This document shows positions 19,866 to 54,840 of a stretch of 64,000 nt of DNA, piece after piece. Source of the stretch: Octopus sinensis (lineage: Eukaryota); the NCBI RefSeq assembly GCF_006345805.1, contig NC_043009.1, positions 56,420,001 to 56,484,000 of the forward strand, given 5' to 3'. The notes under the pieces are model-generated. The model did not search any database and was not told the DNA's origin. It worked only from the letters and a program-made list of their open reading frames with translations. Position numbers and translations under genes: made by a program. How positions within the stretch are numbered: position 1 is the first letter of the stretch; every line of letters begins with the position of its first letter.

Positions 19866-19902
19866 ACATGGAAAGGAAGCAGTCACCATATTCCCTTTCA
19901 TA

Positions 19903-19992
19903 TCAGCTCTGATGAGTGTAAAGTTATATAAACAGTTGGTTACTTAACACTCCATTGTATTCTTTACACAAAACTGATTGGTAAGATCAGCC
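19903..19992 (+). ncRNA. Degenerate type-I hammerhead ribozyme motif (G12A)
   Basis: CUGAUGA (19909-19915), perfect 8-bp stem II gtgtaaag/ctttacac, AAAA in place of GAAA, GUA site 19981-19983. Confidence 0.55.
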
Positions 19993-20418: not shown

Positions 20419-21259
20419 CAAAATGAGAAAATGGAGAAATATATCTAAATCATTCATCAACTATCAGATAACACCGAATCATATACTTTATTAAAACACT
20501 ACACAAGAGCATTAAGATTAGACATTAATACAGTACAATAATTACAATCAATATAATGAGATATAACTAAATAAATATAACAAGATATAAAATACATATA
20601 CATTATAACTGACAGCTGTTTCGGCCATGCAGATAAGTATGTCTCATTTAACCTATTAGCCATATATTGCAGGTATAAATGAGACATTAACAAAAATATC
20701 TAACGGCCTCTTCGGAGATTCTAATGTAAGTATGAGTACATATCCAAAAATCATTTACATATAAATATAAATATGAGTGCATATATACTCATATCCTTAT
20801 ATATATATACACATATATACATATACATAATAATATAAAATAATATAAATAATATAAATCAATATATATCAATAAACATAATAATGTTCTATATTGAATG
20901 TTACAGTTCCTCAACAATATTAAGAAATTACAACAGATATATTCATACTTAATGCTGACATATATAGTAAACAGTTCATTATATTAATTTGTGTTACTTT
21001 ACAAAAAGTCAATAATGTTAATACCAATACCGTTATCAATAACAATAATGTTAGCAACACTGAAAACCAATAAATACCACCATAGTATTTGGTCTTGTTA
21101 TATTTATTTAGTTATATCTCATTATATTGATTGTAATTATTGTACTGTATTAATGTCTAATCTTAATGCTCTTGTGTAGTGTTTTAATAAAGTATATGAT
21201 TCGGTATTATCTGATAGTTGATGAATGATTTAGATATATTTCTCCATTTTCTCATTTTG
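20419..21259. mobile_element. 841-bp element with 167-bp near-perfect terminal inverted repeats, TA-flanked (Penelope pseudo-LTR remnant or Tc1/mariner-type MITE)
   Basis: 20419-20585 vs 21093-21259 are reverse complements with 1 mismatch seen; TA on both sides; internal hammerhead motif. Confidence 0.8.
20600..20727 (-). ncRNA. Type-I hammerhead ribozyme motif with long loop-2 hairpin (core CCGAAGA)
   Basis: acauuagaaucu-CCGAAGA-ggcc...ggcc-GAAAC-AGCU-GUC-aguuauaaugu; predicted cleavage between 20611 and 20610. Confidence 0.65.
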
Positions 21260-22139
21260 TATATATATAATATACATACATACATCAAGATATAATTGTG
21301 GAGAGTGTATTGGAAATGCTAACGAAACACTTTCTCTTACTGAATCTGTAAAGAAAGTGGTATGGAAGTGCTATTATGAGAGGCTACTGAATGTGAAGAA
21401 TATATAGGAAAGGGTCTTATCTTTCCAAAGTAAACACAAATGTGGCACCAGCCACATCCAGCCCACATATTCTACCTATTTTATATAAAAACTGACCAGA
21501 TCCAACCTCTTACACCTACCCTAATATGTCATTCTACAAATATGAAAACATACCATTGAAATCTTGGATTTACAAAATAATGCATGATTAATACAATACA
21601 ATGTGAATAAATAGTCATTACATTTGACGGAGTAATCTGAATACTAAAGGGTTAAAGTCGCTAGCAGTATAATTGCATACATAATTATGGATATGAAGGC
21701 AGGGAAAATAGTAGGTCTATCAGGGGATAGTTTCTGAGTTGCTTAAAATATTAGGTGAAGTAGGATGTATGTTAGTCACTTGTGTAATCAATCAGGAAGT
21801 TTTCATACACAATCTGTACAAGGGAATAAGGAAGAAGAGATGAAGTTTTAAAGCAAAGAAATGAATGAACAATTTCAGCATAAATATTCCGGTGTTTGGT
21901 TATTTATTATCTAAAAGGAATAATTTTAGATAATATACCTCATGATATCTTCTGGATAATACCTTATACAATGGAAATAAAAGAAAAGGTTAATTTCACA
22001 AAAATAGATCCTGTGGAGAAAAGTAAGTTCAAAGTTAGAGAGTGACAAAATTAGTAAATATTGATTTCAAATTTTGGTACAAGGCCAGCAAGTTTTTTTT
22101 TTTTTTTGGTGAGGAAGGAAATAAGTCGATTACATTGAC

Positions 22140-23240
22140 AAAACAGATTCCATCACATTCCAGGGGAAGAAACTAGAAGTAGTTGATAGTTTCTGCTACC
22201 TAGGTGACCAAGTAAGTAGTGGAGGTGGATGCTCAGAGAGTGTCACCACTAGAATACGAATAGCCTGGGCAAAGTTTAGAAAGCTTCTACCCCCCACTGG
22301 CGACAAAGGGTCTCTCGCTCAGAGTGAAAGGTAGATTGTACGACGCATGTGTGTGAACTGCCATGCTTCACATTAGTGAAACATGGGCTGTGACTGCAGA
22401 GGACATGCATAGGATTGAAAGAAATGAAGCTAGCATGATCTGCTGGATGTGTAATGTCAGTGTGCACACAAGACAGAGTGTAAGCGCCCTGAGAGAAATG
22501 CTGGACATAAGAAGCATCAGATGTGGCATGCAAGAGAGACGTTTGCACTGGTATGGTCATGTACTATGGATGGATGTGGAGAGATGTGTGAAGAAGTGCC
22601 ACTCCCAAACAGTTGAAGGAATCCGGGGTAGAGGTAGACCCGGGAAGACATGGGATGAGGTGGCCAAGCATGACCAGCAAACGTTGGGCCTCACAGAGGC
22701 AATGATGAAAGACCGAGACCTCCAGAGATATGCTGTGACTGCGAAAACCCGTCAAATAATGTGAGTTCATGGCTGTTTCCTGCACCAGCTTCCCATAGAA
22801 GCTTCAGCCCATCCATAGTACCTTGGATCACAGGATGGCCTGCTCTGCTTACCTTGGATCGTAGGGTGACCTGCTGTGCTTGAGGAGACCTATTGAGTCA
22901 AGTACATCAACATCAAAAAATCAAATGGAAATTGTAGTTGTGATACCTATGCTGGTGGCACGTAAAAAGCACCATCTGAATGTGGCCAATGCTAGTGCTG
23001 CCTTGACTGGCTTCAGTGCCAGTGGCATGTAAAAAGCACCAACTGATCGTGGCCATTTCCAGCCTCCCCTGGCACCTGTGTCGGCAGCACGTAAAAAGCA
23101 CCCACTACACTCACAAGTGGTTGGTGTTAGGAAGGGCATCCAGCTGTAGAAACACTGTCAGATCAGATTGGAGCCTGGTGCAGCCTCCTGGCTTTCCAGA
23201 CCCCAATCGAACCGTCCAACCCATGCTAGCATGGAAAACA
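22140..23240 (+). mobile_element. 5'-truncated RTE-clade LINE: ORF C-terminus plus 3' UTR module
   Basis: [36 protein letters not shown]; ETWAVTAEDMHRIERNEASM; RRLHWYGHV; GRGRPGKTWDEV; contains a frameshift and a stop; followed by gcacgtaaaaagcacc repeats and the ttaggaagggcatccagc module. Confidence 0.88.
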
Positions 23241-34026: not shown

Positions 34027-34506
34027 TTAACAACTACAGCCATAGTCTTTCTTTCCGTCATCTTGTTGAATATCAGGGCTACAACCAATGTTAGTGATCT
34101 GTGAACTTTCTGAGGTGAATCGTGGGATATAGCTGGGCATCATTGGTTTAGAGTTCTTCAGTTTATGAGCCAGTGTCATAAAAATTGCTTCTACGTGGTT
34201 CGCTTTCTCATCATCTTTAGCTGAAGTTTCAAAAAGGGGCATGTTGTGAGAATCAGCAAATTTCTGGGCTGCATTGGTATTGACAGCAATTCTATCGATG
34301 ATGTCACATTTGTTGCCGACCAAAATTCTTGGAATGTCTTTATTTAAGTTATGACGATCACATTCTTCAATCCAGTTTGGCATGTTCTCAAATGAGCTGA
34401 TCTTTGTAACATCATATACAAAGACAACAGCGTGCACATTCCTGTAATAATGTTGGACCATACTCTTCCGAAATCTTTCTTGCCCTGCTGTATCCCACAG
34501 TTGTAA
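34027..34506 (-). CDS. RAB33: Rab33 last coding exon ([12 protein letters not shown]...YGCSC*)
   Basis: tttcag acceptor on minus, 160 codons including TAA. Confidence 0.95.
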
Positions 34507-37500
34507 CTGAAAATAGAAAATGAAAACAAAATAAAAAGTGAATAACTTCAAAGGCTACAGTTCTTGATTTTCAGATCCTCTTAAAGAAACTAAAAATAAA
34601 GGTATGAAGAAAACTGAACAACCTTTCTGTGACTTGAAGGTACATCCTGACACACCTTCACTGCCATCTTCCTTCCCTTCTAACAGGGGTAACCATGTAT
34701 CTCCCCTACCACAAGACATCTGTTCCTGCCCCCCTATTATAACTGCAACCTCTCATCACCTGGCATAAAATCACCTCCCTCAATACAACTTACCTATCTC
34801 AGTTGAAAGGTCTTGTCTTGCAGGTTACTTGGTAATGTCACTAGTGTTGGCATTGTGTAAAAAATACCCAGTCTATAAGGTTGTTGGTGTAAGGACAAAT
34901 ATCCAGCCATAGAAACCATGCAAAAGTAGACATTGGAGCTTGATGCAATCCTATGGGCATTCAACTTCTCTTGAACTGGCCAACAAATGTTAGCAGAGAA
35001 AGCAGATGTTAACTGATGATGATGATGATGCATATTGTTATTGCTAAAATGCATTAAGCATCCATTATCATTATTGTCTTGATGTACCCTTTTCCATACT
35101 TGTATGGGTCAGATGGAATTTGATGAGGAAGATTTTCTATGGCTAGATGCCCTTTATATTGTCAACCCTCACTTGTTTCCAAACAGTTCCCCCTTAATTG
35201 GACATGTTTTCATGGAAGGCTGGGAATGAGACTGCCTGATGGCAGTGACACTTGTTCATGACTACTTCTTGACACCAAAACAAGGAGACACACAAACACA
35301 CATATGTCATTTCACTAAGCCCTTCACTCCTTAACAAGCATAGGCCATTGACGACTTTTCTCCACTAGTCTTCACTCAGGATGATCTTTTAGGATATCCT
35401 CTCTTCCTTGAGGGAAGGCCTTCCTCTCCCACATCTTGAATTGTCATCGATGTTTCTGTAACTTTATTTTTTCTAGGTAGAGATATTGGCCTTATGCAAG
35501 CACATATTTTTACCTTCTAACCTTTGACCTGTCCAGCTGGACAGGTCAAAGGTTAGAAGCTAGGCTAATATGGACCACCTCTTACCAAAGGTAAAAATAT
35601 GTGCTTGCATAAGGCCAATATCTCTACCTAGAAAAAATAAAGTTACAGAAACATCGATGACAATTCAAGATGTAGGAGAGGAAGGCCTTCCCTCAAGGAA
35701 GAGAGGATATCCTAAAAGATCATCCTGAGTGAAGACTAGTGGAGAAAAGTCGTCAATGGCCTATGCTTGTTAAGGAGTGAAGGGCTTAATGAAATGACAT
35801 ATGTGTGTTTGTGTGTCTCCTTGTTTTGGTGTCATGCAGTAGTCATGAACAAGTGTCACTGCCATCAGGCAGTCTCATTCCCAGCCTTCCATGAAAACAT
35901 GTCCAGTTAAGGGGGAAATATTACCTTGTTTGGAAACAAGTGAGGGTTGACAATATAAAGGGCATCTAGCCATAGAAAATCTTCCTCATCAGCTTGTAGT
36001 GGATATGTATATGTGTGTATATTGTATGTATGTATACGATGGGCTTTTTTCAGTTTCCATCAACCAAACCTACTCAGAAGGTGTGTTTGGCAAGGGCAGT
36101 AGTAGAAGATATTTACCCAGGGTACCACACAATGGGACTGAAGTCGAAATCATTCTAGTTGGGAAACATGATACTAAGGCTTCTACTACAACTATCCAAA
36201 GATAATTCCCTCAAAGTACAACTGATCCCAGATAATCCCACACCACCACTGGAGAATTTCCTCAGTTAAGTAGTATATGTACTGGCCTGTTTGCTATTCA
36301 GTCCATTTCAATATGTCTGGAAGTTTAAAAATTACTGCAGCAGAGGAAGACAAGATCGTATGTCCAGGATTACTGAGATATTTAGTAATACTTCTTCATT
36401 AAGAACATCTGTTTCCTCACCTGTCTCTGATAGTAATTTTTGTCTTATTATATAGATTCTTGTGCATCAAACCAACTCACACATTCTCTTTATTTGATAT
36501 CCTTGTTACCTGAACCTACTTCTTTTATTAAGTTTGGATAAATTTACACTACTATCACATTAAATTATTATTGGTCAACTTTTTGCTTACCAACTTTGGT
36601 ACTTGATAAAATTTCTACCATTCTTTGATCTAATTACTTCCATTAATTTTGCATTTCCTGGCCCTAACACCTTACTTTATATATATATATATATTTACAT
36701 AATATCGAGGTCTCTTTCATTCTTTTGTTATCTTACCATTTTTATCTATATCTCATGATGATGATGATGATGATGATGAGATATAGATAAAAATGGTAAG
36801 ATAACAAAAGAATGAAAGAGACCTCGATATTATGTAAATATATATATATATATATATATATAGAAAGAAGGTATAAACATACATATATATAAAAAAAGGT
36901 GTAAGAAAAGGAACACAAGAAATGTAATTGTTATTAGTGCTTTCAGAATTACATGTGTTTCAGAAGCCCAGCAAACATCAAATTACATGAGCTTAAAAGC
37001 CCAATTATGTGACATATGCAGCTAGCCCTCCCTTTTCATCAGTATTATTGAAAAAAAAATACAACAATGCCAATAATGCTAATGAAGAGGGCCAGCTGCA
37101 CTTGGTGCATAATTGGGCCTTTAAGCTCACATATTCCATTTTCTATATATGGCATACAGACTATACACACTAGCCAATCTAGCGTTATGAAGGTTTTCAA
37201 GCCACAATGAGTATAGGAGTAAAATGTAGAACAGATCTACTATATCCAAATATTTTGGCAATGTGTTGTGCTTTCTGGTGCTGGACTTCATTAATCCTTT
37301 CTCGATTTTCTACCATATATATATGGTATATATAGATATATATGTGGTCTAGTGGCTAGAGTGTTACACTCACAACTGCAAGATCATGGTTTCAATTCTA
37401 AGACTTGGTACTGCATTGGGTTCTTGAGCAAAACACTTCATTCCATATTGCCCTACAATCACTTGGATATCCGACATGTGGCAGGCCATGCACCTGTACA

Positions 37501-40500
37501 GGTAATGTTGATTTGATCACTATAAGCAAATACCTATACACACACACGATTATCATTTTTATGTACACATATGATTATCATCTTTGTGTTAAGTTTTCCA
37601 TGGTATGGGTTATGATGGGGCTTCTCCAACATATATGGCATACAGTCTATAATACACACTAGCCAACCACTTGTCAACTTCTTCATGAGGTTTAGTATTT
37701 TGAGATCAGCATTTGCTACTTTTCCCAACCATTGCTTTTCTACTTGGATCACTTGGACCTTCTTTACCCAGCTGTTGCCCTCCATACACATCCCATACCA
37801 ACTTACTGGATTCCTCTTTTTACTAAGTTTTCCACTCAATCCATCTATACTTCTTTGTTCATGCTTACCAACATTACACACCCAGAGGAGAATGTTTACT
37901 ACATTTCTTTCCAACTTCAACACATCCTCTGCCTTCAATATCACACAGAGATGATCAAACAATCTGAGAGAGAAAGAGAGACCCCTTGCTGCCAGCAGCA
38001 ACTTTTCCTACCACCATTTCCATTGCTGAGAAGGCCACCTAGACAACAGAAACTGTCAAATATTTGCAGGAGGCTTTCCAAGTGTTTGAAAGAATTTATT
38101 TCCTGGGTACTCTTTATTGCTAACTTCTCCAGTGCATCTGCTACATATAAACCCCAGTTTGACTGTGATCCCACTGTATTTCTTGAACAATGTAATTTAC
38201 ATTTGATGTATAGGAAATATCTAATTGTAGTTTATAATGTGGTATAGAAACAGAACAGAACAGTGACGTGTTTATTTATTTATATCTTTGCCACTGAATC
38301 AAGAGCCTGTTCTCTGATATTGTCATGTTATTGTTAGAGAATGAGATTCCTTTTGCTGGCTGAGCAGTGTGACTGTACTTATCACTGGCAATTTTAGTAG
38401 CTGCAGGAGGTCAGGTAGTGCGAGCTTCATTAGTATTTGTGGTGGTGTCTAAATTCAGTTTATTATAATTGTAGACTACTGCTGCTAAATGTTACATTTT
38501 ATGCTTGGTATTTTTTGGCAATGGTACTGGTAGTATCTGACTGCCTTTTGCTTTTAGAGCTGCAGTTGACCACTTGTAACTGGGTCAAATTAGTCACCCG
38601 TACTAAATTTCTGGTGATTTTACATTATTATTTCAAGTTTATTCACATGTTTAGTAATTATATAACAATTTCTAAAATTCTTTTTTAGTTCTTGCCTTGT
38701 AAGAGTAACGTAAATTCAATAGCAATTTCATATAACTATGGTTAAACTTTTAGAATCATAAGGGCATTAAGAAAAAGCAACCTGAAATTACAGGTGTAAT
38801 TATAGGTTGCAAACTGAGGGAATATTTTTTTGTTGCAATATAACAAAATCACACAAGGGCTTGGAGAGAAACACATAACTGTGGACCATCTGGGGAATAA
38901 AAGAAGAGTAATGAAGTACAGAGGTACAAAGAACAAATCTGAAGCATTATGCAGTATACCTGTCTCTCCTGCATGACTACTTCATTTATCTGACGCAATT
39001 TTAAAGCAAATCTATCAGAGCATTGCAGGTAATGGCACTAACGATGCATTTAATGCCCAAGCTTTGCTATTATGCAATATCTAACTTAGCATAAAATATT
39101 ACACAATTTGCCTGCTACTAAGAGAGGGTGGGAGAGAGAGTTCCTTTCTTATCAGCAAAGTGCTTTCCACCCCTACCAATTTTTCAACCTTTCTTACTTT
39201 GTCTGTTTTCACCACTGATTAAGTCATTAAGGTAACAGAAGTTGTCAACACCTTCTAGAAAGTTTTTCTAAGAATTTAAAAGATTTTATTTCCAAGGTAC
39301 TCTTATTGCTAACTGCCCCTGTGCATCTGTCACATGCAAATTTCTCCATGTCAGTTTGCCTATAATCCCATTGTATCTCTTCTTTCCTTGATGGTTGTAG
39401 AATTTCATATATTAGGTTTTCATTCATTGATTTCAGGTACTTTTTCCATGTTTGGAATTATTTCTCTAATTCTTCAACTGATTCAGGTGTAAGAAAAAGG
39501 TTGTCCATTGGTATACAAGAGTTTGTATGGGCATGGCCAATCTTAAACTCTATTATAGCACAGAGTACTAGAAACAAGAGAGGACTGAAAACAGAGCCTT
39601 GGTGGACATTCCCCAAAAGCCTTACTAAACTCATTGCTAATTTCCTCTTGCTGACAACACCCCTTTACATGGCTTACACAGCTCTCACAAGTCATTCATC
39701 AATACCCAGTTTTTTCAATGATTACAAAGCTACAGAGTATGTTACCCAGTCAAAAGCTTCTGAAAGTCAACAAATGCTAGTATAGCATAGTATATGTTTG
39801 TTCCTTTTCGAGCCATGCCTGGTCATAAGGACTGGTTTCCCGGTTTCCTTGGCGTATAGGTTCCCCACCTGGATAGGACACTGGTCTGACGCAGGTAAGA
39901 TGCAAGATGCAGGAGGAAAGAGTGAGATAAAGTTGTGGCGAAAGAGTGAGCAGAAGTTCGCCATTACCTTCTGCCGGAGCCACGTTGAGCTTAGATGTTT
40001 CGCTCATAAACACACACATCGCCTGGTCTGAGATTTGAACCCACGATCCCTCGACCGCGAGTCCGCTGCTCTAACCACTAGGCCATGTGCCTCCACAGTA
40101 TAGTATATATGCTCACGTGGTCACCCCAGTTTTATCCTGCCTCAACTTCTAACTCTTTGGACTTGCATGTCTTAACCACTTCCCAAATTTTCTGCACCTC
40201 TCCTCATCTACATACCAGCACTGGATATACTGACTCTACTTTCATGGATTTCAGTGGATTTTTTCGTTAGTATAGTGGCTTGTTGTTAGCTAAGAATTTA
40301 TGTAGTTGTCTCATTAGGAGAAAACCAACAATGGTACCATGTCACAATACAAGCCAAAATGGCTTCTCATTAGCTCTGCTATATCTATTTCTGTTATCTT
40401 AATAAATTGGTCTGACAGTTTAATGACTCTGTCGTTACATCTTTGTGTTCTGAGTTCAAATCCTGCCATGGCTTGCCTTGGGTGGTAAACTTAATCCATC

Positions 40501-41454
40501 ACCTGGTTTAACACCACCACCCAGCACTTTGGGTATCCTTACTGGAGTGTGCTCTGTTGCAGGCATTCAGAGTAGGTCTATGATTTGAGAACACCTTGTA
40601 CTTTCTCCCTCTTACTAGTTTTGAAGGTTCTACAAATAGTCATGGGCATTGCCATTCTTTCATGATGAATATATAAAAAAAAACAACAAAAAACTAAAAC
40701 AACAAATATATTTTTAACCTGTTTGTTGTTGTCTTTTAATGTTCTCTCTCATTCTTGTTGAATTTGGTTTGTTTTGGGGCATGTTTTGTTAACATACCAT
40801 TACTCTTTCTTTAATAATTCCTTCTTACATTTTATTTTTTATGTTGTCTATATTAGCTGTCACTATGGTAATTGAAAAGCAGGACAATTAGACAAACACG
40901 GGCATCACATTTATGTCTTGTATATTTGGAAAGAAACATTATATCACAATAAAATCAACTAATTATGAACTGAACGACAAAAATGGGAAACAGAAACTAA
41001 ATTAAAACAGAACATAAATGAAAGATTCAAAACACACATATATGTCTTAGGAGATGGGGGAGCACTTTTGGAAGTGAAAGTATTGAGGAATTACTCTTGG
41101 AGTCTATGAAAAGGTGAGCGCGAATGCAGATCCCACATATAGAAATAGTGCATCTGCATTGCCTACATTTGAGGTGATCACAAAGGTTAACTCAACCGGA
41201 TTGCAATGGAAAGGCCTCACTTTGGGAGGATCACCTTGATGATCATGATTAACCCTTGTGCCAGGTAAGTACATTTTTTGTATTCCCTCATTCTTTTATT
41301 TGTTCCAGTCATTTGACTGTGGCCATACTGGAGCATTGCCTTTAGTTGAAGAAATCGACCCTAGGATTTATTCTTCATAAGCCTAGTACTAATTCAGTCG
41401 GTCTCTTTTGCTGAACCCTAAGTTATGGGGACATAAACACAGACACACAAATAC

Positions 41455-41485
<31 letters not shown>

Positions 41486-44400
41486 CGTCTTCCAAATCCA
41501 CTCACAAGGCTTTGGTTGGCCCGAGGCTATAGTAGAAGACACTTGCTCACGGTGCCATGGAGCGGGACTGAACATGGAACTATGTGGTTGGGAAGCAAGC
41601 TTCTTACCACATGACAATTACCGCAGAAGCAATTCTGTTCATTTCTAGTCTGCCATGAAAGAAAATGTCTGGCCACTGGAAATATCTTGCTTGGAAACAA
41701 GTTAGGGTTGGTGAAAAGTAAGGCACCTGGCCATAGAAAATCTGCCTCAACAAATTTTGTCTAACCAATGCAGGTAGAGAAAACTGGATTTTGAACAAGG
41801 ATTGTGAGAAGAGAGAGGGAAAGAGAGAGAGAGAGGGAAAGAGAGAGAGAGAGAGAGAGAGTGTGTGTGTGCGTGCATGCATTGTTTTTTTTTTTTAAAT
41901 TCAGTAAATTAACCCAAACAGATGACGGAGAAAGTAAGATAAAAAAAAATGTTAGGATGGTTGAAACAGTTTCTCCGCATTGAAAAATAAAGTGCATTCC
42001 GTTGCAATTACCACTGTGACATTTTATTAGAGAAAGTGAAATGGACAGCTACTCGACCTGTATATGAATTAATACAGATACTTTGATAGTATTTTGTTGT
42101 ATAAAATTTCACTAGGTTCCAAAGATACACAAGAATAAAGTGCAAGTTTGTAGTTTTGTTTTGATTTTTACACCTGTTTTTCCATGCTAGCATCACATAC
42201 ACACACGACAATGTATCACCATAATCATCATTAGTTTAATGTCCACTTTTCTATGGTCACATGGGTTGGATGGTATTTTGTTGAGGTGGATTTTCTACAA
42301 CCGGATGCCCTTCCTGTTGCCAACATTCACCAACCAGGCAAAGCAAATATTTCCTCATGACCAGACACAGAAGACGGGAAATGAAGGACATGGCTTCACT
42401 GACAGTGACACTCATTTACAACTGTTATACACTGTCAAAGCAAGGAGATAGTATCACACACACCCAGATATGTCTCTGAAAACAATAACCCTCTGCTTGA
42501 ATGGGCTACAGTTCCCCAGAGTTGACCATGTATCTCTTCCAGGTGGTGCTATTTAATTAGACATGGCTTGAGTCAACTTCGGCCGAAACTTATCTTAGTA
42601 ATCTAATCTATGCTGTAACCTTTTAATCAAAGCATGACAACGTGGGTAGAGGCTGATATCTTAACATTTCTGATGGTCTTAAGTATAAAAAAATTATTAA
42701 AGATTTATATAGAACTACATTCAGAGTAAGTCTATAAGTTATTGTGTTTAGACCTGGTTTCTATCCTCAAACTGTTCCGTTTTTTTGATGGTGATTGTGG
42801 TGAAAGCAGAGACAGTGTTGATGATGACGATGGTCAAGATAAGTATAGGAGGAGGGAAAAAATAGTATTGGTGGTTATAATGGTGACAGGAGTAGTGTGC
42901 TGTGAGGTGGAAATGAGGTGCTTGGCGGAGGTCTGCGCTCTCCGAGTGCTTTTCTAGTATTGTATTGTGGTTGTTTCCTTTGAGAATTTATAGAAAGCTT
43001 TGGGATTTATTTTTTTTTGCTTTCCACAACTCTCTCTGCTCTTTCCCTTTTGTGAAAGAGTTTGAGCTTGTTTTCGATTCCTCAGAATGTCCATATTAAG
43101 ATAGACTTCTACATGCTGATACATATATATGGTGTTTTACGTGCCATCTGCACAGGAGCCAGTCCGATGGCACTGGCAACGACCACACTTGAATGTGGTT
43201 TTTCATGTGCTACTGGCACGGGAGCCAGTCAGTGGCCCTGGCAACGATCATGCTCGGATGGAGCTTTTAATGTTCCACTGGCGTCAATCAGGTGGTACTG
43301 TCATTGGCCACGTCAGCGATTTTGATTTCATTTGTCTCAACAGGTCTTTGCAAGCAAAGTTTATTGTCCAATGAATGAAGGATACTCATATGTGGGCTGG
43401 TGTGGTGGTGGGTGTTACTGTTCCATTCGCGTTTTCTATTGAGGCTTGCTCTGTCTACTGCTACGTGTGTAGCCTCTGTGATCTGTCTAAGTGCCGTGTC
43501 AGTTCTATGTCCTGTCTGAGCATGTTGGAAGGGCACTGATGAGCTTTTCCCTTCTTTGAGCTCTCGCCAATGTTCACTTATGCACTCTCCTATGCTGCAT
43601 GCAGTCTCTCCAACGTAGGTAGCTGTCATGTTTCTGCACCGACCCTCAGTACATCATAAGCTACACACTACATTCCTAACCTTACAGCTAACTCGTGGGT
43701 TCATCCTACATACAACACAATTGTACTCTGTACAAGGAGACTTATCAAAGGGATAGGTATTACAGATCAGGGATTTTAATGGGGCACCATGCTTCTCTAC
43801 TACTTTAATTCGTAGATTAGCCTTACTTAATGTTTTCTAAAAAGGTGTGCTAGTTCACTACCAGGGGTAGCATCGACGAACGTAACACTGGTATTTTTTG
43901 TTGCCATACCAAGTGTTAGCCTTATTTATCTTATTACTGGTCCTTTCTGTGCTGTTCCATGATTTACTCAAGTACAGTGAGCAGATCCCTTTAGCATCAC
44001 TCTCTATAATGGCTTTGTACTCAGTCTTGGCTCCTTTGTACACTCTAGTCCAGTCCCTCTGTTTGTAATCAGAGAACTGCATGTGGTGGATGAAGTGTTG
44101 TACGTCTTTCAAATTCCATAGGGTTGCACACGCGAGACATATTCCTCATCACAGTCACCAAGTCAGTTTTAAAAATATTGAAGTTAGCGTTGTCCACAAT
44201 TGCTGTGTTCTTGTGAACAAGGTACTTAGGGCCAGGGGTTAGGCATAATGAGAGTGAAGGATCTGGACCTTACAATTCTTTGTTTCTAGCCAGAGTTCAG
44301 TGTCTAAAATGGGTAATCTACAGTTAGGGTGCTTACTAGGGTAGTCTATTATTATTTCTATACTCTGGTGAAAGGAGCTAGCTATTTGCTGGATGCTCTC

Positions 44401-47400
44401 CAGAGTGTTAGCTTCTAGATCATTAACATTGTCTTGTAGGGGTGCTTTGGCCACTATGTTGATAATATCCACATAGCAGGAGTACATGGCTAGGTTTATG
44501 GAGTTCTCTGCAAATTTCTCTGTAAGTCTCCTGTCCCACCATACCATAAATAGGTTAGCCACATTGCCAGCGATACTGACACCGATGGCTGCAGCATCCT
44601 CCTTTGTTATTAAACTTAAATATATGGCCCTTGAGTGTGGTCTTGGTACTCGCACCCACTGTATGTGCGACCATATTTTTAACCTGATCGTTATTTCTGG
44701 TCCACTTGTTCCATCTCTCTTTAGGGGTCTTTCTTGGCCATAGAAGTTATAATGGGGAGTCTACCTCTTATCGATATAGAGGATCAGAAACAACTGTCAC
44801 GTTTATCTACGTAATCATTGTTGCATGTCAGTGTCAGGAGATATATAAATGTGTATATATATATATATATACCTTTTGTACAATCTACCTTTCACATTGA
44901 GCAAGAGGCCTTTTGTCACCAGTAGGGGTAGGAGCTTTCTGAACTTTGCCCAGGCTATTCTTATTCTAGTGGTAACAATCTCTAAGCATCCACCCCCACT
45001 ACAGACTTGGTCACCTAGGTAGCAATAAATAAACAGTTACCACGGTAGCAAAAATTCACACAAGTAACAAGGATGTAACAACCTATTTATAAAAGTACAA
45101 ACTCCAGGTTAGAGTGAAATATCTTGTACAATATAGATAAATAAATAAATGGAGCTAAATGTAGGTGTTATTCAAATTCTTTTACTTTCAACATATGTTT
45201 TGAAGACAACATTGGTATTATTCCAGAAGGAATAAAATGGTATAAAACAATGCAATCTTTTCGTCAGGGAAAAAATATATATGTGTATATATATATACAG
45301 CCTGCGTTTTTGTTGTTTTGTGGTGCGCAATTCTATCTCATTATCAGAATCACTATTCTTTCACTCCGGCAGTGGCAATGTTAAACATATTCATTCAATT
45401 ATGTTATCCCAAATCCCAAAACTCCATCTCCTTGTGTTCTGTCTTTGACCAACCTCTGGTCTCTCTCTCTCTGTTTTGTTAACCACTTGCTTCTCACAAT
45501 ACTTAATCTCTGCTCTCCACCACCCCACCCTATATTAACTAGCTAATTTAGATTCCCCTACCTCATATTTTAATACCTCACCGCATGGAGTAGAAACCAG
45601 AAGATGTTCAGATAAGCAGCCTTGTTTTCCAGCCTAGCACACATCTAAAACCTCTCTCTCAGTGCAAATTCTTATGATTACTTTATTATTTCATTTCATT
45701 ATCTATCAATGTAAACACAGTTTTGTCTTCCACACCGTATATGTTTAGAGAAAAAAACTTAAGATCCCTTCACTCAATCCAGCTCTCCCTCCTTCTCCTC
45801 TTTCACACTCATTTATTACTGTCATTTATTCATTCATTTATCTAATTCTGTCACAGTTTGGCTGACTGAAAACTGTTGGTTATAGTGCTAGTTAAGAACT
45901 CAAATGCCCAATTCTATCTCATTATTATCATTAATATTCTCTCACACCGGCAGTCTGTGTTTCTGCTGTTTTGTGGTCCAACCAGTCGCCATGATTGACT
46001 GCTAATTCCAAAAGTTTTTTTTATTCTTTCTCTGTCTATTTCCTCATGTTCCTTTCTGTTGAAGAGCATAGGCTCGAAATGTAAATGACTTTCTTACCTT
46101 CCCAAGCATCAAACTAATATACCTGCTTGTTGTTTATACCCCTGTCTTTGTCATTTGTTTTTCTGTAAATTTCATCTATAGGCGCAGGAGTGGCTGTGAG
46201 GTAAGTAGCTTGCCTACCAACCCATGGTTCCGGGTTCAGTCCCACTGCGTGGCATCTTCGGCAAGTGTTTTCTGCTATAGCCCCGGGCTGACAAATGCCT
46301 TGTGAGTGGAATTGGTAGACGGAAACTGAAAGAAGCCTGTCGTATATATGTATATATATATATGCGTGTGTGTGTTTGTCCCCCTAGCATTGCTTGACAA
46401 CCGATGCTGGTGTGTTTATGTCCCCGTAACTTAGCGGTTCGGCAAAAGTACTGGGCTTACAAAAGAATAAGTCCCAGGGTTGATTTGCTTGACTAAAGGT
46501 GGTGCTCCAGCATGGCCGCAGTCAAATGACTGAAACAAGTAAAAGAGTAAAAAGAGTAAAGAGTATATATATATATATATATAAAAATCTTTATTTATCT
46601 TTTATTGGTTTCGGCCCAGGGCTGAGGTCATGCTGGTGCACCACCATAGTCATTTGGTGTTGTTTCTGGTATTGTTTTTGGTAAAGTAGTGAGTTGGAAG
46701 GAGCTGCTCTTCTTTGCGTCTCCTGCTGCAATGTGGATTTCTCTGGTATCTTAGATAGAAACCTGTCCAGACGTTCCTTGAAAACTTCCACATCAACAAC
46801 TTGTAGATCTCTAAGGTTGCCTGGCAGGATGTTGAACAATTCCGGGCCCTTGAAACCCAAACTATTGCAGTACTGTGTCCTTATTTTAGATGGGGAAGAC
46901 AGGATCTTTGACATGATGCAGTGCTGTCTAGTTCGAAGATTGGTATAGCTGTCAATTCCAAAATTAGGAGCTAAACTCCCCAAGATCTTCTAAATATATA
47001 TCACCACAAATCTCTCTCGTCTTATCTCCAGGGAATAGAGACTCAGCTCCTTTAGCCTCTCCTAGTAGCCCATCTTTTGCATCGAGTTAATCTTTGTGTA
47101 TTGGTGCTGGATTACTTTGAATTTTGCAGTTTGTTTCACATTCTCTGGGGATCATAGTTGGGAGCAGTAGTCCAAGTGGCTGAGAACGGAAGTCATCCGT
47201 AGGAGTAGCAGGGCATCCCTTTTCCTGGTTCTGAATGTCCTCAGAATCCATCCAGCTACTCACCTGCACAGTGTTGCCATCTTGGTAATATGCACATGGG
47301 ATATTGCATCATTGCTCATGTGAACCCCCAGGTCATGCACTGACTTTCTCTCTAGGATCGTGTTACCTTCTGGTCCAGTGTATTTCGATTTTAGCCTGGT

Positions 47401-48842
47401 GTTGGACCGATAGTGGAGTGCCTGAAATTTCATAAGCATTGAACTGCATGTTATTTTTGTTAGTCCATTTGTATATTTCATTTAGATCTTTCTACAGTTT
47501 TATTATGTCCTCTGGGTTCCTAACTGCCTGCGATACTTTTGTGTCATCAGCATAACTGGTCAGATTGGCTGACTTACTGTGGGGGCATGTCTGAGAGGGC
47601 CACCACAAATGGTAGTGACCCCAGTACAGTTCTCTCTGGGACTCTGCTGAGAATTGGTGTCTCTTCAGAGTGAGAACCATTGGCTACAACTGTCTGACTC
47701 CGGCTCTTCAGAAAATCATGCAGCCACTTTCCCAGTTTCCCAGTAATACCAAGGTTTCACAGCCTGTGACATATCATGCCATGATCAACCTTGTTGAAGG
47801 CCTTGGCAAAGTTGAGGTATATCATGTCTACAGCTGACTGGTTTAGCTGTTGTTTCAGTGCCCAGTCAGAGTGTAGCAGCAGCTGGGTGAGGCAGCTCCT
47901 CCCTGGATGAAAGCCATGTTGCGTGTTTGTGAGAAGGTTCTTTTTCTTCTAGGAACATGATCAGCCTTTTTCAGACAATGCGTTCCCTTGTCTTCCTAAC
48001 ATGTGAGGTCAGAGATGGGCCTGTAGTTTTTAGCATCTGCTTTGTTCTCTTCTTTATGGACAGGGCATATCATATCCTCTTTTGCCATGTTGGGAAGTAT
48101 ACCAAATGCAAGGAAACTCTGAAAGAGTATCTGCAGTTTCTTTGCAAGAGCCTTTTTACATGTCTTTACGAGAACGGCCAGGAGTCCAGCTGGACCCATT
48201 GCTGAATTTGATCTCAACTCATCAATGGCCAATATTACATCTTCTTCTGTTATGCTGATGTAATTGATGGTTGCCTCTCTAGATTTGTTACATTGAAAAA
48301 CTCCTCAGGCTTATTTGCATATTTTCCATTGGAGAAGTGAAAACATTTTGGAATTGTTTTAGTGCTTCACTTATCTTCACCAGGTCTGAAGTTAGTGAGC
48401 GGTTTTAACCAAATACTGGGCTTATCTTATAGCGTACTGGGGTAGACTCCTTTGCCAATGTGAAGACGGCTTCAGGATTTCTTCTTATATTTTTGACTGC
48501 CCAGGTTTCTCTTCTCTTTCTTTTTCATGAGAGATTTTGAGTTTATTTTCTATCAAGAAGAGTTCCTCTGTCAGGTGGGATTTCACACTGTCATTGGGGT
48601 GCTTGTTCAAACAATTTTAGATCTTTATTCTCTGTCACATGATTATTCTCCTGCCTCAGGGAATAATGTTTTTGTGTGTATTGGCTCTCTTCTCTGGGAC
48701 ATATTTAACGCATATGCCTCACATTATTTACATGAATTTATTGAGTTTCATATCTATGTCTTGCAGAGAGAGGCTTTTATATGTATGTATTTTTTGTATG
48801 TATGTATGTATATATATACACATATACATCTATACCTACTTG

Positions 48843-48880
<38 letters not shown>

Positions 48881-49131
48881 ATATCTATACATACATATCA
48901 TCATCATCATCGTTTAGCATCCGCTTTCCATGCTAGCATGGGTTGGACGGTTCAACTGGGGTCTGGGAAGCTAGAAGGCTGCACCAGGCCCAGTCTGATC
49001 TGGCAATGTTTCTACGGCTGGATGCCCTTCCTAACGCCAACCACTCTGTGAGTGTAGTGGGTGCTTTTTACACATATATATGTGTATATATACACATATA
49101 TACATACGTATGTATTCATATATATATTTAC

Positions 49132-49165
<34 letters not shown>

Positions 49166-49224
49166 TTACATATGTATATACATATATACATACATACATA
49201 TACACATACATATATTTACATATG

Positions 49225-49255
<31 letters not shown>

Positions 49256-49494
49256 TTACATATGTATATACATATATACATACATATATATACACATACA
49301 TATATTTACATATGTATATACATATATACATACATACATATATTTACATATATACATACATATATTTACATATGTATATACATATATACATACATATATA
49401 TATACATATATACATACATATATATATACATATATACATACATATATATATACATATATACATACATATATACATACATACATATATACATACA

Positions 49495-49526
<32 letters not shown>

Positions 49527-50078
49527 CACATACGTATATTTACATATATATATACATATATTTATATATATATATACATACATATACATATATTTATATA
49601 TATATACATACATACACATATATACATACACACATATACATATATACATACATACATACACACACACACACATATATATAGTGCCGCATTGACTGGCTTC
49701 CGTGCCGGTGGCACATTTAAAGCACCCACTACACTCGCGGAGTGGTTGGCGTTAGGAAGGGTATCCAGCTGTGGAAACACTGCCAGATCAGACTGGAGCC
49801 TGGTGCAGCCTCCTGGCTTCCCAGACCCCAGTCGAACCGTCCAACCCGTGCTAGTGCGGAAAACGGATGTTAAACGATGATGATATATATACATACATAT
49901 ATTTACATATTGGTTGGCATCCTTTTTGCCTCGGGAGACAATGGAGTTGCGCATAAAATAGTCTATATATATACATATACACACACACATATATACATAC
50001 ATATATACACTCACACACATATATATATGTATGTACACACACAGACACACACACATATATATGTATGTATCTATATAT

Positions 50079-50111
<33 letters not shown>

Positions 50112-50211
50112 CATACGTATACATACCCACACATGTATATTCATACACACACACACACACACACACATGTATATTCATACACACACACACACACCACACA
50201 TATATATACAT

Positions 50212-50296
<85 letters not shown>

Positions 50297-50312
50297 CATA
50301 TATTTATATATA

Positions 50313-50359
<47 letters not shown>

Positions 50360-53300
50360 CACACACACATATATATATACACATGGAGAGCATGTAAAGA
50401 AACAAGCCAAATAGACTATTTACACCAGGAAATGAGATAAGAAGATAATTGTAAATACTAAGTTTTTTTCCTAGTGAAGAATATGCCACTCAGTATAAGA
50501 CAAGTGATTAATGACTTTGCAATGAGAGCTAGATGGACTCAGAGACAAAAGATAATTTAAAGATGGAAGACATGAAGGTGAAAGAATGTTGGTTAGTTGC
50601 AGATTCAAAGAAGTTGTAGTTGGTACTTAAGACAGAAAAGGGAAAATAGAGACTTATAACATACAAAAGGGAAGAAATAGGAGTTTGTACAAGATAACCT
50701 GCTGAGGACAACAGACCAGATTTGTGGCTGTTACAAGGCGTCAATCAAATGGAAGGCAATGTAGTAGTGGAATAGTACTGTACATAGATCCATAAAAACT
50801 AAGTGAGAGGCTTTGAAAGAATGGAAATAAGACTGCAATTTAGAGTATCTAAAAGAGAAGCTTGGCATCAGGTAAATTTAACTAAGGGAGAAAAAGAAAA
50901 TAAGAGGTTTGCACATGTTCTGGGATATGATGAGAGACACAAAGTATTCTGGATCACAAGACAGTATGCTAGAGAAAATTAAGATGCTGTTAGGGAGAAG
51001 TATTTTTGGAATGATAACAATGAACATGACCATTACCAATGCTGAAAAGAAGTGACATTAAAATGCTGTTATGAAAGATTTCTGTACTGCCAGTCATTAC
51101 TCCCTTTTCCCCAGGCCATTCATTAGTGACATCCATCATTTACCTTTACTATCACCCAGCTCTTTTACTTCATATCATTTGAGTTTTCTCTGACCATGCT
51201 AAGATCAGAAAATACATGTGAGTCATAGTCTTCTAACCTATCTAACCCATACCAGCATAGATGTAAAATGATAATGACAACAATATTTATCTGTATAGCT
51301 ATCATCATCTTTTAACAACTGCTTTCCATCCTGGCATGAGCAGAATGAGTTGTCACTATATCGGTCAGTTTCTATTTAGAGTTTTTACTCTCAAAAACAA
51401 GTTAGAGACCATATCTCATCTTGCACGTTCTATTTTTGGCATGGTTTCTAAAACCCGATGCCCTTTCTAACACCAATTACTCTGCAGAATCTATACACAC
51501 AAACACACCATATATATTTTCATGTCTATCTATCAGGTTTTTAAAAAATTTCTCAAGTGTATGTGTGCACATCATATTTACCCTTGTCTCAATATCGTGT
51601 GATAAATGTGTAAAGAGAAATTTAGTGACTGATGTCATACACTGCTATATAAGCAATGTCGTTTGTTTCCAGTCTTCCTTGCAAAACACGTTTTCCTATA
51701 GGGAGAACATTACCTTGCTTAGAAACAGGTGAGTGTTACTGACTGGAAGGGCATCCAGCTATAGAAAATTTGCTTCAACAAATTGTTTTGACCCATGCTT
51801 AGAAAAGTGAACGAGTTCAGTCCCAGTGTGTGGCATCTTGAAAAAGTGTGTTCTATTTACAGCCTTGGGGTGATCAAGGCTACAACAGAAGCCTGTCACA
51901 TATATATGTGTATGTGTGTCTTTGTGTTTGTTCCCGTAAATTAGTGGTTCAGCAAAAGAAACCGATAGAATAAGTACCAGGCTTTAAAAAAGTACTGGGG
52001 TCAATTTGTTCGACTAGGCCCTTCAAGGCAGTGTTCCAGCATGGTCGTAATCCAATGACTGAAACAAGTAAGAAAATAAAATAGACATACAAATGGCGGT
52101 GCCCCAGCATGGCCACAGCTCATGAGCTGAAACTGGAAAAATCAAATCATAATACAGACCTACATGTATGTATTGTTCATCATCATCAGTTAACGTTCCC
52201 TTTTCCAAGTATGGGTTAAAACAGAATTTGTTGAGGCAAATTTTCTATGGCTGGATGCCTTGCCTGTCAGCAACACTCATCTGTTTCCAAGATAATTTTT
52301 CCCTATGGGAAACATGTTTTTCAAGGAAGACCGGAAGCGAACAACATCGCTAGTACAAGTACGACATCAACCACGAAATTTCTCATAAAACATTTATCAC
52401 ACGATGTAGAGAAAAGGGTAAATACCAACGCGCACACATAAACACGGCAGCTTTTTTGTTTCCATCTACCAACATCCACTAAGAAAATTTTGGTCAACCT
52501 AAAATAACTTGGGTAAATTTTTACTTGGCCAAAGTGCTGCTCAGAGGGACTGAACCCGAGATCATATGATTAGGAGTCAAGCTTCTTAACCACACAGCCA
52601 AATTAGCAACTCTTGTTTATATAAATACGTATATATAATCCTTTCTACAATAGACACAAAGCCTGAAATTTGGGGGAGAAGGGGCCAAATAAATACATCG
52701 ACCCCAAAAGGATTAAAGACAAAGTCGACCTCGGCAGAATTAAATACGTATATATAATGTTTGTGTGCATGTACACGTAGTTATCTATATAAGCGTAAAT
52801 ATGTGTGTGTGTATAGCTACGTGTGTACATCTGCTGTATATATGAACTCTTTTTTTATTATTATTTTTAATGTCAGCCTGACTCTGATCCTACTGCAACA
52901 CTTGGGTGCCCACGTATTTTTGAATGTATGAATAACATGTAGAGAACTCGAACATTCAACTGAATTCGTTTTTAATGTGACACCCCATTAATTTCATATC
53001 GTGTATGGAAAATATTTCGCTGAAAGCTGCCAATATACACAGCTATCATAGAACAAACCGAACTCATTTTCTCCTTTCAATCACAGCTTTTGTTTACAAA
53101 TCTCCCTTCCTACCTTATTTGGAGGAAAAACTTGTCATTGTTTATTTCATAGATTACATCCCACCTCACTTTCACTTGTCAACTTTAAACCAAGTGCATG
53201 GTTTGATTAATATAGAATGGTAATCAGGAGAAATATACATCATTTTCGTTATCTGCCGTTGTTTCAATATAACATTTAATTCGAATAATTAACTTTAGAG

Positions 53301-53481
53301 AAATTGCAGCCGATTAGAAAATTTAAAGAAATAAATTTATTTGCAACGCAAAACAATTCTAATATTATGAACGTAATTTTCTTTTGTGTTCAGAGGGCCA
53401 CAGTTCTAGGAAAGAATGGTTGGGCTCTCGGTAGTAAATTGGTTAACGAGACTTGTTTATATTTAATAAAGAAATTGAGAC

Positions 53482-53520
<39 letters not shown>

Positions 53521-53542
53521 TATATACATATATATATATACA

Positions 53543-53582
<40 letters not shown>

Positions 53583-54012
53583 CATACATATATATATACA
53601 TACATACATATATACATACATATATATAACATATATATATACATATATATATACATATATATATACATACATATATATATAATACATATATATATACATA
53701 CATATATATATACATACATATATATACATATATATATACATATATATATACATATATATATACATATATATATATACATATATATATATACATATATATA
53801 TACATATATATATACATATATATATACATATATATATATATACATATATATATACATATATATATATATACATATACATATATATATACACATATATATA
53901 CATATATATATATATACATATACATATATATATACACATATACATATATATATATACATATATATATATATACATATACATATATATATATATACATATA
54001 CATATATATATA

Positions 54013-54044
<32 letters not shown>

Positions 54045-54840
54045 TATACATATATATATATACATATATATATGTGTGTGTGTATGTATACATACACATA
54101 TATATATACACACACACACATATATATATATGTGTGTGTGTGTATACATACACACACACATATGTATATATGTATGAGTGTGTATATGTGTGTGTATATA
54201 TATATTGTATGTGTGTGCGCGCGCACATGATTATATATGTGAGTACATCATTTGTGTACAAGCAGTTTGAAAGAAAAAAATTAAAATCGTCAAAAATAAA
54301 ATAAAAAAACATAAAGCTTACCTTGATTTGTTCTCCTTCCACTAAAATCATCTTTTCACGAAAATCAACACCAATTGTAGCTTCTGTCTTGTCTGGGAAT
54401 TTACCACTACAGAACCTATATGTGAGGCATGTTTTGCCAACATTGGAATCGCCAATCACAATAATCTTGAAGATCCGCTTTTGTGCTTGTTTTTCGATTA
54501 TTTTGGAAGACGGAGCAGTGGAAGGACCAGACGTAGTCACTGTTGTCGTTGTTTTCTTAACATCGCCAGTCTGATTCTCTGTGTTGGTTGTTAATATCGT
54601 TTTTGTTGTTTCATTATAACGGCCAGCTGACGAGCTGCCTTCTAGCTCGTGACCAGTAGGTAATTCTGTGTTCATTCTGTGAATATCATATGTAACAGAG
54701 AAATGCAAATTTAAACAAACAATACAAACAAAAAACAAACTGAATTCGAAGAAAATTTAGTTTTTTTTTGATTATTTTGGGGGTACGTTGCAGTAGTCTG
54801 GTTAAAAAATACAAAGCCAGATGATTTACCTTTCCTCCAT
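34027..54840 (-). CDS. RAB33: Ras-related protein Rab-33 (spliced gene span): complement(join(34027-34506,54322-54676,54830-54840)), 281 aa
   Basis: G1 GDSNVGKT in [23 protein letters not shown]; effector TIGVDF; G3 [29 protein letters not shown] (Rab33-specific); G4 GNKCD; G5 ETSAK; C-terminal CSC prenylation motif; GT-AG introns in phase. Confidence 0.95.
35121..35991. repeat. 871-bp near-perfect palindrome centred on CAG|CTG (35536/35537)
   Basis: Arms pair throughout; about 5 substitutions plus 8-nt and 31-nt gaps in the left arm. Confidence 0.95.
36678..36854. repeat. Perfect 79-bp inverted repeat around a 19-nt (GAT)n spacer
   Basis: 36678-36756 vs 36776-36854; the 62-nt non-microsatellite core is identical. 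Confidence 0.95.
36945..37128. repeat. Imperfect inverted repeat containing a decayed hammerhead motif (minus) and a truncated inverted partner
   Basis: CUGAUGA 37042-37036, GAAA 36961-36958, CACAUG-UA; arms 36988-37050 vs 37071-37128. Confidence 0.55.
37620..37960 (-). mobile_element. Decayed RTE LINE C-terminal fragment
   Basis: [23 protein letters not shown]...WYG aligns by eye to the 22363-22764 peptide. Confidence 0.65.
39480..39780 (-). mobile_element. Decayed RTE reverse-transcriptase fragment
   Basis: AFVD..AFD..., [25 protein letters not shown] motifs with stops and frameshifts. Confidence 0.6.
39796..40096 (-). mobile_element. tRNA-derived SINE, well preserved
   Basis: A-box tggcctagtgg and B-box gggttcaaatc followed by a non-tRNA body. 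Confidence 0.8.
41112..41272 (-). pseudogene. RNU1: U1 snRNA full-length decayed copy
   Basis: Minus strand gtACTTACCTGGCAC...atgatcatcaagg (stem-loop I, U1-70K loop), ccattgca (stem-loop II, U1A loop), ...gggatctgcattcgcgctcacc 3' stem; 161 nt; Sm site and protein-binding loops mutated. Confidence 0.85.
41285..41612 (-). mobile_element. tRNA-derived SINE (OR-like family)
   Basis: Reverse-complement family match. Confidence 0.75.
43400..44700 (-). mobile_element. Penelope-like element remnant: reverse transcriptase plus GIY-YIG endonuclease
   Basis: [15 protein letters not shown]...YVDII...LPILD (44655-44239); thumb region (44112-43858); EN NVVCSL*C..C...[14 protein letters not shown]...LNRKREW (43680-43420); disrupted by stops and frameshifts. 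Confidence 0.8.
45185..45272 (-). ncRNA. Decayed hammerhead motif upstream of the Penelope ORF
   Basis: CUGACGA (45267-45261) ...gucuuc-AAAA-CAUAUG-UU; G12 mutated. Confidence 0.4.
46181..46563 (+). mobile_element. tRNA-derived SINE (OR-like), tail-to-tail with the CR1 LINE
   Basis: Full-length family match. Confidence 0.85.
46588..48540 (-). mobile_element. 5'-truncated CR1-clade LINE (RT domain and 3' end)
   Basis: [56 protein letters not shown]; frameshifts and stops. Confidence 0.88.
48901..49070 (-). mobile_element. (GAT)n-tailed repeat module (RTE 3'-UTR type)
   Basis: Homologous to 25050-25225; inverted relative to 49718-49884. Confidence 0.75.
49071..49680. repeat. (TA/CA) compound microsatellite
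   Basis: Seen directly in the sequence. Confidence 0.95.
49718..49884 (+). mobile_element. (GAT)n-tailed repeat module (RTE 3'-UTR type)
   Basis: ttaggaagggtatccagctg...gttaaacgatgatgat. Confidence 0.75.
49960..50385. repeat. (TA)n/(CA)n compound microsatellite
   Basis: Seen directly in the sequence. Confidence 0.95.
53467..54230. repeat. (TA/TACA)n compound microsatellite, about 760 bp
   Basis: Seen directly in the sequence; source of the spurious Y/I/H/T ORFs. Confidence 0.95.
54322..54676 (-). CDS. RAB33: Rab33 exon (Thr-rich N-extension, G1/G2; ...EGEQIK)
   Basis: AAG|gtaagc donor; ttcacag acceptor followed by A-ATG (in-frame Met at 54675). Confidence 0.93.
54830..54840 (-). CDS. RAB33: Rab33 candidate first coding micro-segment (ATG GAG GAA AG)
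   Basis: AG|gtaaat donor and a 153-nt intron with a T-rich tract; joins in frame to give MEER-MNTEL. Confidence 0.55.

Follow-up and report, generated by a model that had tools for sequence, protein, structure and literature searches.

An 871-bp spacer-less palindrome in the Rab33 intron of Octopus sinensis, a probable inverted duplication by template switching

INTRODUCTION

Template-switch mutations, as described by Loytynoja and co-workers (PMC8794818, PMC10710096, PMC7954356), are among the closest known relatives of the element reported here, an 871-bp near-perfect palindrome in the intron of the Rab33 gene of Octopus sinensis. The palindrome lies in a 64,000-nt stretch of genomic DNA (RefSeq assembly GCF_006345805.1, contig NC_043009.1, positions 56,420,001 to 56,484,000 of the forward strand), which was analyzed as a whole and is called the window below; coordinates refer to the window unless another sequence is named. 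In template-switch mutations, as in the octopus palindrome, a reverse-complement copy adjoins its source, which is kept, the stem starts out perfect, the switch points would fit a short microhomology or a short palindrome, and transcription of the DNA gives an RNA hairpin. A single switch event can yield a perfect hairpin (PMC8794818, PMC10710096). Published short-range switches mostly involve tens of bases, the largest in PMC8794818 being 59 bp, whereas the octopus palindrome involves about 455 nt with zero loop, and its ancestral state is predicted.

Fold-back inversions and leading/lagging-strand switches of the origin-dependent inverted-repeat amplification (ODIRA) type (PMC7467729, PMC3907307, PMC10766183, PMC4689423) share with the octopus palindrome, under the parse proposed below, a very short inverted-repeat seed at a fork or break and a microhomology junction, and switching between the leading and lagging strands produces inverted copies (PMC10766183). 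Such events yield duplications, triplications, or dicentrics on a scale of kilobases to megabases, and a spacer is usually present; the octopus case is a small interstitial insertion, with a return to the original template after 455 nt. The human palindromic AT-rich repeats PATRR11, PATRR17, and PATRR22 (PMC1851657, PMC3197554) are also near-perfect, spacer-less, and several hundred base pairs long. Their polymorphic internal deletions and asymmetric variants are attributed to replication errors, and the octopus palindrome likewise has a deletion in an arm. However, the PATRRs are strongly AT-rich, whereas the octopus palindrome, with 41% G+C (58.6% A+T), is less AT-rich than its own window (35% G+C, 64.7% A+T), and its putative 31-nt deletion spares the center, unlike those of the PATRR variants. 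It is also not known to act as a hot spot of rearrangement.

Two other systems are comparable at the level of RNA. Inverted Alu pairs and other sources of young-repeat double-stranded RNA (dsRNA), known as substrates of ADAR enzymes (PMC9989829), also form long intramolecular dsRNA in introns from nearby inverted young copies. Such pairs consist of two independent repeat insertions; the octopus arms are a local segmental duplication of mostly single-copy sequence, and their duplex is far longer and more perfect. Drosophila hairpin RNA (hpRNA) loci are transcribed inverted duplications of hundreds of base pairs that form a long hairpin, as does the octopus palindrome. They need a pathway of the Dicer-2/AGO2 type, which is apparently absent from molluscs (PMC12479628), and the octopus hairpin has no evident target gene.

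The palindrome was first pointed out in a reading made from the sequence alone (here called the sequence-only reading). In addition to reexamining its claims, we report in which direction the copying went, which arm suffered one of the deletions, a candidate microhomology, and an approximate date of origin.

RESULTS

Two arms of 416 and 455 nt meet without a spacer

According to the sequence-only reading, an 871-bp palindrome without a spacer has arms of 416 and 455 bp that differ by about five substitutions and a perfect 46-bp center on CAG/CTG (the slash marks the axis of symmetry). When the left arm was aligned globally with the reverse-complemented right arm (35121-35991 in all), 410 positions matched and 6 did not, and the left arm had two gaps, one of 8 nt and one of 31 nt. 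An inverted-repeat search of the window found the same palindrome as a block of 335 nt (98%), a block of 65 nt (100%), and a 26-nt center, with 0 nt between the arms. The structure was thus confirmed by both methods, the number of substitutions being six. The letters of the perfect core, CTTCTAACCTTTGACCTGTCCAG/CTGGACAGGTCAAAGGTTAGAAG, were read directly in the sequence. The coordinates of all parts of the palindrome are collected in Table 1.

A dispersed repeat identifies the left arm as the original

The outer 80 to 150 nt of each arm belong to a dispersed repeat resembling a short interspersed nuclear element (SINE), and nothing else in the arms resembles other sequence. Copies of this SINE-like family are present at 41610-41783, 51699-51840, and 52160-52262, elsewhere in the window, and in Octopus bimaculoides. 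The boundaries of the palindrome were compared with the family in a multiple alignment with five other copies, O. bimaculoides being the source of two. In these five copies, the family reads ...CCTCAACA/AATTCTGTTTTAACCCATGC...GGAAAAGGGAAC. The left boundary, read on the complementary strand, is ...CCTCATCA/AATTCCATCTGACCCATACAAGTATGGAAAAGGGTAC, and the repeat carries on for 30 to 40 nt past the arm end at 35121/35120. The string ...CCTCATCA recurs at the right boundary but leads there into GCTTGTAGTGGATATGTATATG, a TG/TA-rich sequence unrelated to the repeat; the right flank, GCTTGTAGTGG..., has no SINE-like homology, and the repeat ends exactly at the last base of the arm. Since the repeat crosses the left boundary and halts at the right one, the left arm, judged from this homology, is the original in its native context, and the right arm is a copy that ends at an arbitrary breakpoint inside the repeat; a transposon with terminal inverted repeats (TIRs) does not fit this pattern.

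The inner part of the arm, about 300 nt, had no other copy in the 64-kb window and 27 kb of O. bimaculoides DNA (91 kb in all; low copy numbers elsewhere are possible). A sensitive blastn search with the arm against the window, the O. bimaculoides locus (sequence L001), and a further sequence (L002) gave matches only in the outer ~80 nt, and a protein search with a 54-amino-acid open reading frame (ORF) of the inner arm returned no homologues. ARAGORN found no tRNA-like SINE heads. No target-site duplication was found: the flanks, ...GATGGAAT on the left and GCTTGTAG... on the right, share nothing. The view that this is a local fold-back duplication rather than a pair of transposon TIRs is therefore upheld, because the right boundary cuts a dispersed repeat that continues across the left one and there is no target-site duplication. 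The accompanying statement that the arms hold a mix of older repeat fragments stands for one SINE-like fragment in the outer 80 to 150 nt and not for the inner ~300 nt, which appear to be single-copy.

Both gaps lie in the left arm

The 8-nt indel could be polarized with the help of the repeat family. Four other copies show the state of the right arm (GGGAAAATATTACCTTGCTTGG), so the 8-nt deletion hit the left, original arm after copying, in agreement with the loss proposed earlier. The 31-nt segment found in the right arm alone is bracketed by CTT on both sides, and no other copy of it exists in the window at up to 6 mismatches. With no nearby copy from which an insertion might have come, the 31-nt difference is more simply read as a deletion from the left arm, probably mediated by the CTT microhomology. 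Thus, of the proposed loss of 31 nt at a ctt microhomology, the CTT junction and the gap were found, and loss is the probable direction of change.

An asymmetric central deletion had also been suggested to have stabilized the palindrome. The best-documented case of such deletions is that of the central-deletion variants of PATRR11 (PMC3197554). As the 31-nt gap lies 23 nt off the axis and leaves the perfect 46-bp spacer-less core intact, the likeness to stabilizing deletions that remove the center is only approximate, and the suggestion is only loosely apt.

The junctions are compatible with a template switch

The 5-mer CAGCT is common to the symmetry axis (CAG/CT) and the right junction (CA/GCT), with a p value of about 0.013 (1.3% of random window positions share at least 5 nt spanning both junctions). 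This suggests a possible course of events. About 455 bp of intron DNA, consisting of the SINE-like fragment and about 300 bp of single-copy sequence, would have been copied as the reverse complement directly beside its source, with zero spacer. Under the microhomology parse, the ancestral sequence would have been ...GACCTGTCCAGCTTGTAGTGG.... A nascent strand ending in AGCT would have left its template and annealed to the same 4-bp palindrome on the complementary strand. Copying would then have run backward for about 455 nt before the strand returned to the original template via a 2-nt CA microhomology and went on into GCTTGTAG. Because intrastrand snap-back does not easily yield a palindrome without a loop, an interstrand switch at the fork is favored. 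Afterward, the original arm would have lost 8 nt and probably also 31 nt, while 5 to 6 substitutions gathered between the arms. An empty site, under this mechanism, would be expected to read either ...TCCAGCTTGTAG... or ...TCCAGGCTTGTAG..., the latter corresponding to a blunt join.

The palindrome lies in the Rab33 intron, and its RNA is predicted to fold into a long duplex

The window contains a two-exon Rab33 gene on the minus strand, whose exons were placed by tblastn with two Octopus Rab-33 proteins (Table 1). In comparison with the O. bimaculoides protein, exon 1 has two one-residue indels and one substitution. The splice sites of the intron are canonical, with the donor gtaagc and the acceptor ttttcag (the acceptor cag occupies 34509-34507, and the exon starts at 34506). 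The distance of 614 nt reported between the palindrome and the 3' splice site was found to be exact, with 614 intron bases from 35120 to 34507. The intron is 19.8 kb long here, versus ~6.3 kb, gaps included, in the O. bimaculoides assembly.

The minus-strand RNA of the palindrome had a folding energy of -785.6 kcal/mol in silico, compared with -241.5 ± 8.4 kcal/mol for dinucleotide shuffles (z = -65), so a chance origin of the fold can be dismissed. The pre-mRNA duplex of about 400 bp proposed in the sequence-only reading is borne out by this calculation. Since the palindrome lies inside the Rab33 intron, the transcription of which follows from the gene model, a hairpin is expected in the pre-mRNA, and every Rab33 pre-mRNA should, according to the predicted fold, form an almost perfect intramolecular duplex of ~410 bp. 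In a search of the palindrome against Rfam, no model reached its gathering threshold; the best scores, 23.9 to 31.1 bits against thresholds of 48 to 100, were to unrelated microRNA (miRNA) hairpin models. A known miRNA family was accordingly rejected, the scores being far below the gathering thresholds.

The same intron holds other features. A full-length match to U1 small nuclear RNA (snRNA) was found at 41109-41272 on the minus strand, which is the strand of the gene, with 89 bits against a gathering threshold of 69.5; this represents a copy of the gene or else a retro-pseudogene. At 53490-54131, ~190 bp downstream of the exon 1 donor, there is an (AT)n microsatellite of ~640 bp.

The orthologous locus gives an approximate age

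Octopus vulgaris and O. sinensis split about 2.5 million years (My) ago. A more distant species, O. bimaculoides, was used for comparison, and the DNA of the window is 86 to 95% identical to its orthologous locus. The two are collinear on both sides of the palindrome, up to 34683 and from 37979. The Jukes-Cantor distance (K) between the arms was 0.0148 (6 differences at 410 sites), and that between collinear Rab33 intron sequence of the window and O. bimaculoides was 0.074 (206 of 2,911), which gives a ratio of 0.20. The split between O. vulgaris and O. bimaculoides has been dated to 13.3 to 34 My (PMC13282606, PMC10700109). From these values, and leaving gene conversion aside, we infer an age of about 2.6 to 6.8 My for the palindrome, with a Poisson range of roughly 1 to 15 My. 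On this estimate, the inverted copy should be absent from O. bimaculoides.

A difference in orientation was also seen near this region. A segment of ~520 bp (15245-15851 of L001, corresponding to 38205-38730 of the window) is inverted in O. bimaculoides relative to the window, and it is flanked there by a 90-nt inverted repeat (97.8%) that is absent from the window. Either a small inversion accompanied by a duplication at its breakpoint or a contig placed in the wrong orientation in the Illumina-based O. bimaculoides assembly would explain this.

Other inverted repeats in the window

A second young palindrome is present at 36664-36905 in the same intron, ~690 bp from the first. Its perfect arms, at about 36692-36752 and 36780-36840, are extended by (TA)n, and its center, TCA/TGA, is followed by (TGA)8, with weaker symmetry further out. 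A template switch of its own may have produced it, or both palindromes may stem from a single complex event. Another inverted repeat, at 20410-20585 and 21093-21270, has 176-nt ends with 98.3% identity around a 507-nt AT-rich spacer and may be an element like a miniature inverted-repeat transposable element (MITE) or another inverted duplication. The unit lies in 19086-23087, a stretch that has no counterpart in the O. bimaculoides locus. The region 48895-49890 was considered as a sister case of the first palindrome and rejected; its 996 bp, with 75% self-complementarity, consist of a self-complementary AT-rich microsatellite, (AT)n/(TACATATATATA)n, flanked by two SINE copies in inverted orientation, and do not stem from a duplication.

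Table 1. Coordinates of the palindrome, its flanks, and the Rab33 gene in the window
Feature	Position	Strand	Description	Evidence
Left arm	35121..35536		416 nt; ancestral copy as judged from repeat homology, contiguous with the left flank	Arm alignment; SINE-like homology out to 35090
Right arm	35537..35991		455 nt; derived inverted copy as judged from repeat homology, equal to the inserted DNA	Repeat homology ends exactly at 35991
Perfect 46-bp spacer-less core	35514..35559		Axis between 35536 and 35537; CAG/CTG, containing AG/CT	
31-nt segment in the right arm only	35560..35590		Left-arm counterpart is a junction at the CTT/CTT microhomology	
~8 nt in the right arm only	35920..35927		Ancestral state; left arm deleted here	
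Left flank continuing the SINE-like repeat	35090..35120			Pairwise alignment to 41610-41783 (-); multiple alignment with five copies
Right junction	35990..35994		CA/GCT; the CAGCT 5-mer also spans the center at 35534-35538	
Rab33 single coding-region intron	34507..54321	-	19,815 nt; holds the palindrome	tblastn; splice sites read directly
Rab33 last coding exon	34030..34506	-	LQLWDTAGQ...GCSC; stop codon 34027-34029	100% identity with Rab-33 of O. vulgaris and of O. bimaculoides
Rab33 first coding exon	54322..54675	-		Identical to residues 1-118 of O. vulgaris Rab-33

DISCUSSION

We propose that the palindrome is a lineage-specific inverted duplication made by a template switch during replication, that it is probably neutral, and that the hairpin in the pre-mRNA is probably edited by ADARs (probability about 0.7 for this account as a whole). 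Several points weigh against it. The microhomology parse is not unique, because an ancestral sequence ...TCCAG/GCTTG... with a blunt join and no microhomology fits equally well. A length of 455 nt is large for the class of short-range template switches. The orthologous sequence does not cover the site itself: the O. bimaculoides ortholog has a gap of 253 N at 16077-16329 of L001, exactly over 34683-37979 of the window, the interval that contains both palindromes, and a Logan contig from a third octopod (87% identity, with the last-exon ORF) ceases to align at 35047, short of the palindrome. The estimate of age leaves out gene conversion, which would make the palindrome appear too young if it acted between the arms. 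Finally, if the window corresponds to the published O. vulgaris assembly, which is based on Oxford Nanopore Technologies (ONT) R9.4.1 reads, some of the differences between the arms could be consensus errors.

That last point leads to the question of whether the palindrome is real. The published O. vulgaris assembly was built with NextDenovo from one ONT R9.4.1 ligation library, with Hypo as the polisher (PMC10700109); long-read data are known to contain fold-back artefacts (PMC12870357), and nanopore base calling worsens in inverted duplicates (PMC7229812). One could imagine a single real arm, with the inverted copy created by a mis-join, or by a long read that was chimeric or folded back, and not removed by polishing. 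We consider this unlikely. A fold-back read would run backward to its end, whereas here the reversal lasts 455 nt only and the sequence then goes forward again, and the rejoined collinearity with O. bimaculoides would demand two precise chimeric joins. Two strands of one molecule would, moreover, be polished to identity, but 6 substitutions and two clean indels, flanked by microhomology or verified by the repeat family, separate the arms, and the right-arm copy retains the state of the repeat family at the very place where the original arm has its 8-nt deletion. The continuity of the repeat also bears on a mobile origin, either as a foldback-type element or MITE whose arms are TIRs or as two head-to-head copies of one element. 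The size of 871 bp and the inverted symmetry over the whole length recall foldback elements and long-TIR MITEs, the outer ends of the arms resemble a dispersed repeat, the genome of O. vulgaris contains numerous unclassified families of TIR elements and MITEs (PMC13282606), and another unit, of 861 bp with 176-nt inverted ends, is present at 20410-21270. Yet the dispersed repeat extends 30 to 40 nt into the left flank, a continuation shared by five other copies, which makes the end of the arm a breakpoint and not the terminus of an element. It is also implausible that two independent insertions were both truncated at the identical base. Together with the lack of a target-site duplication and the single-copy state of the inner ~300 nt, with no recurrence in 91 kb of octopus DNA, this led us to reject a TIR transposon and two head-to-head insertions, and we regard a mobile origin of any such kind as very improbable.

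A selected function was considered as well. The palindrome might be a functional hairpin-RNA locus, processed by Dicer into endogenous small interfering RNAs (endo-siRNAs) or a new miRNA, or retained as a regulator of the use of the last Rab33 exon. It does provide a long near-perfect duplex in a transcribed intron 614 nt from the acceptor, and new miRNA hairpins can arise by template switching (PMC10710096). However, a survey of 32 molluscs, including O. bimaculoides, found neither a Dicer/Argonaute of the siRNA type nor a Dicer-pair signature, and editing was proposed as the response to long dsRNA (PMC12479628). With molluscs apparently lacking a dedicated endo-siRNA pathway, endo-siRNAs from the Rab33 hairpin, one of the outcomes put forward in the sequence-only reading, are unlikely. 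Sub-threshold Rfam matches like those found are expected of any hairpin, no exon in the window matches the arms, and the palindrome is young, with two indels that erode its pairing instead of preserving it. In our view, a functional locus is very unlikely, and a palindrome that is young, eroded by indels, and without sign of constraint is probably neutral.

As regards the fate of the RNA under the template-switch account, most adenosine-to-inosine (A-to-I) sites in metazoans are clustered and lie in dsRNA from young repeats (PMC9989829). This makes hyper-editing of the Rab33 hairpin likely. By analogy, nuclear ADARs would most likely carry out promiscuous A-to-I editing of the duplex, which would then be degraded together with the excised intron.

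A bolder view of the locus can be formulated, although we hold it to be very improbable. With three young local inverted duplications in 64 kb, two of them 690 bp apart in the Rab33 intron, octopus genomes might make and tolerate spacer-less palindromes of several hundred base pairs at an unusually high rate. Where ADARs are highly active and an siRNA pathway is missing, these palindromes would continually supply long intronic dsRNA for hyper-editing, and the hairpin in Rab33 would measurably alter the use of the last exon or the level of Rab33.

By itself, the palindrome leaves existing knowledge unchanged, as template-switch inverted duplications and the editing of young-repeat dsRNA are already established. 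If real, it is a clean natural inverted duplication of 455 nt with zero spacer, in which the sequence by itself reveals the direction of copying and a perfect core of 46 bp has survived, perhaps for millions of years. It would then be a convenient test locus for the birth and decay of palindromes in a metazoan germ line, and likewise for the hyper-editing of intronic hairpins in coleoids and the fate of long dsRNA in animals without an siRNA pathway.

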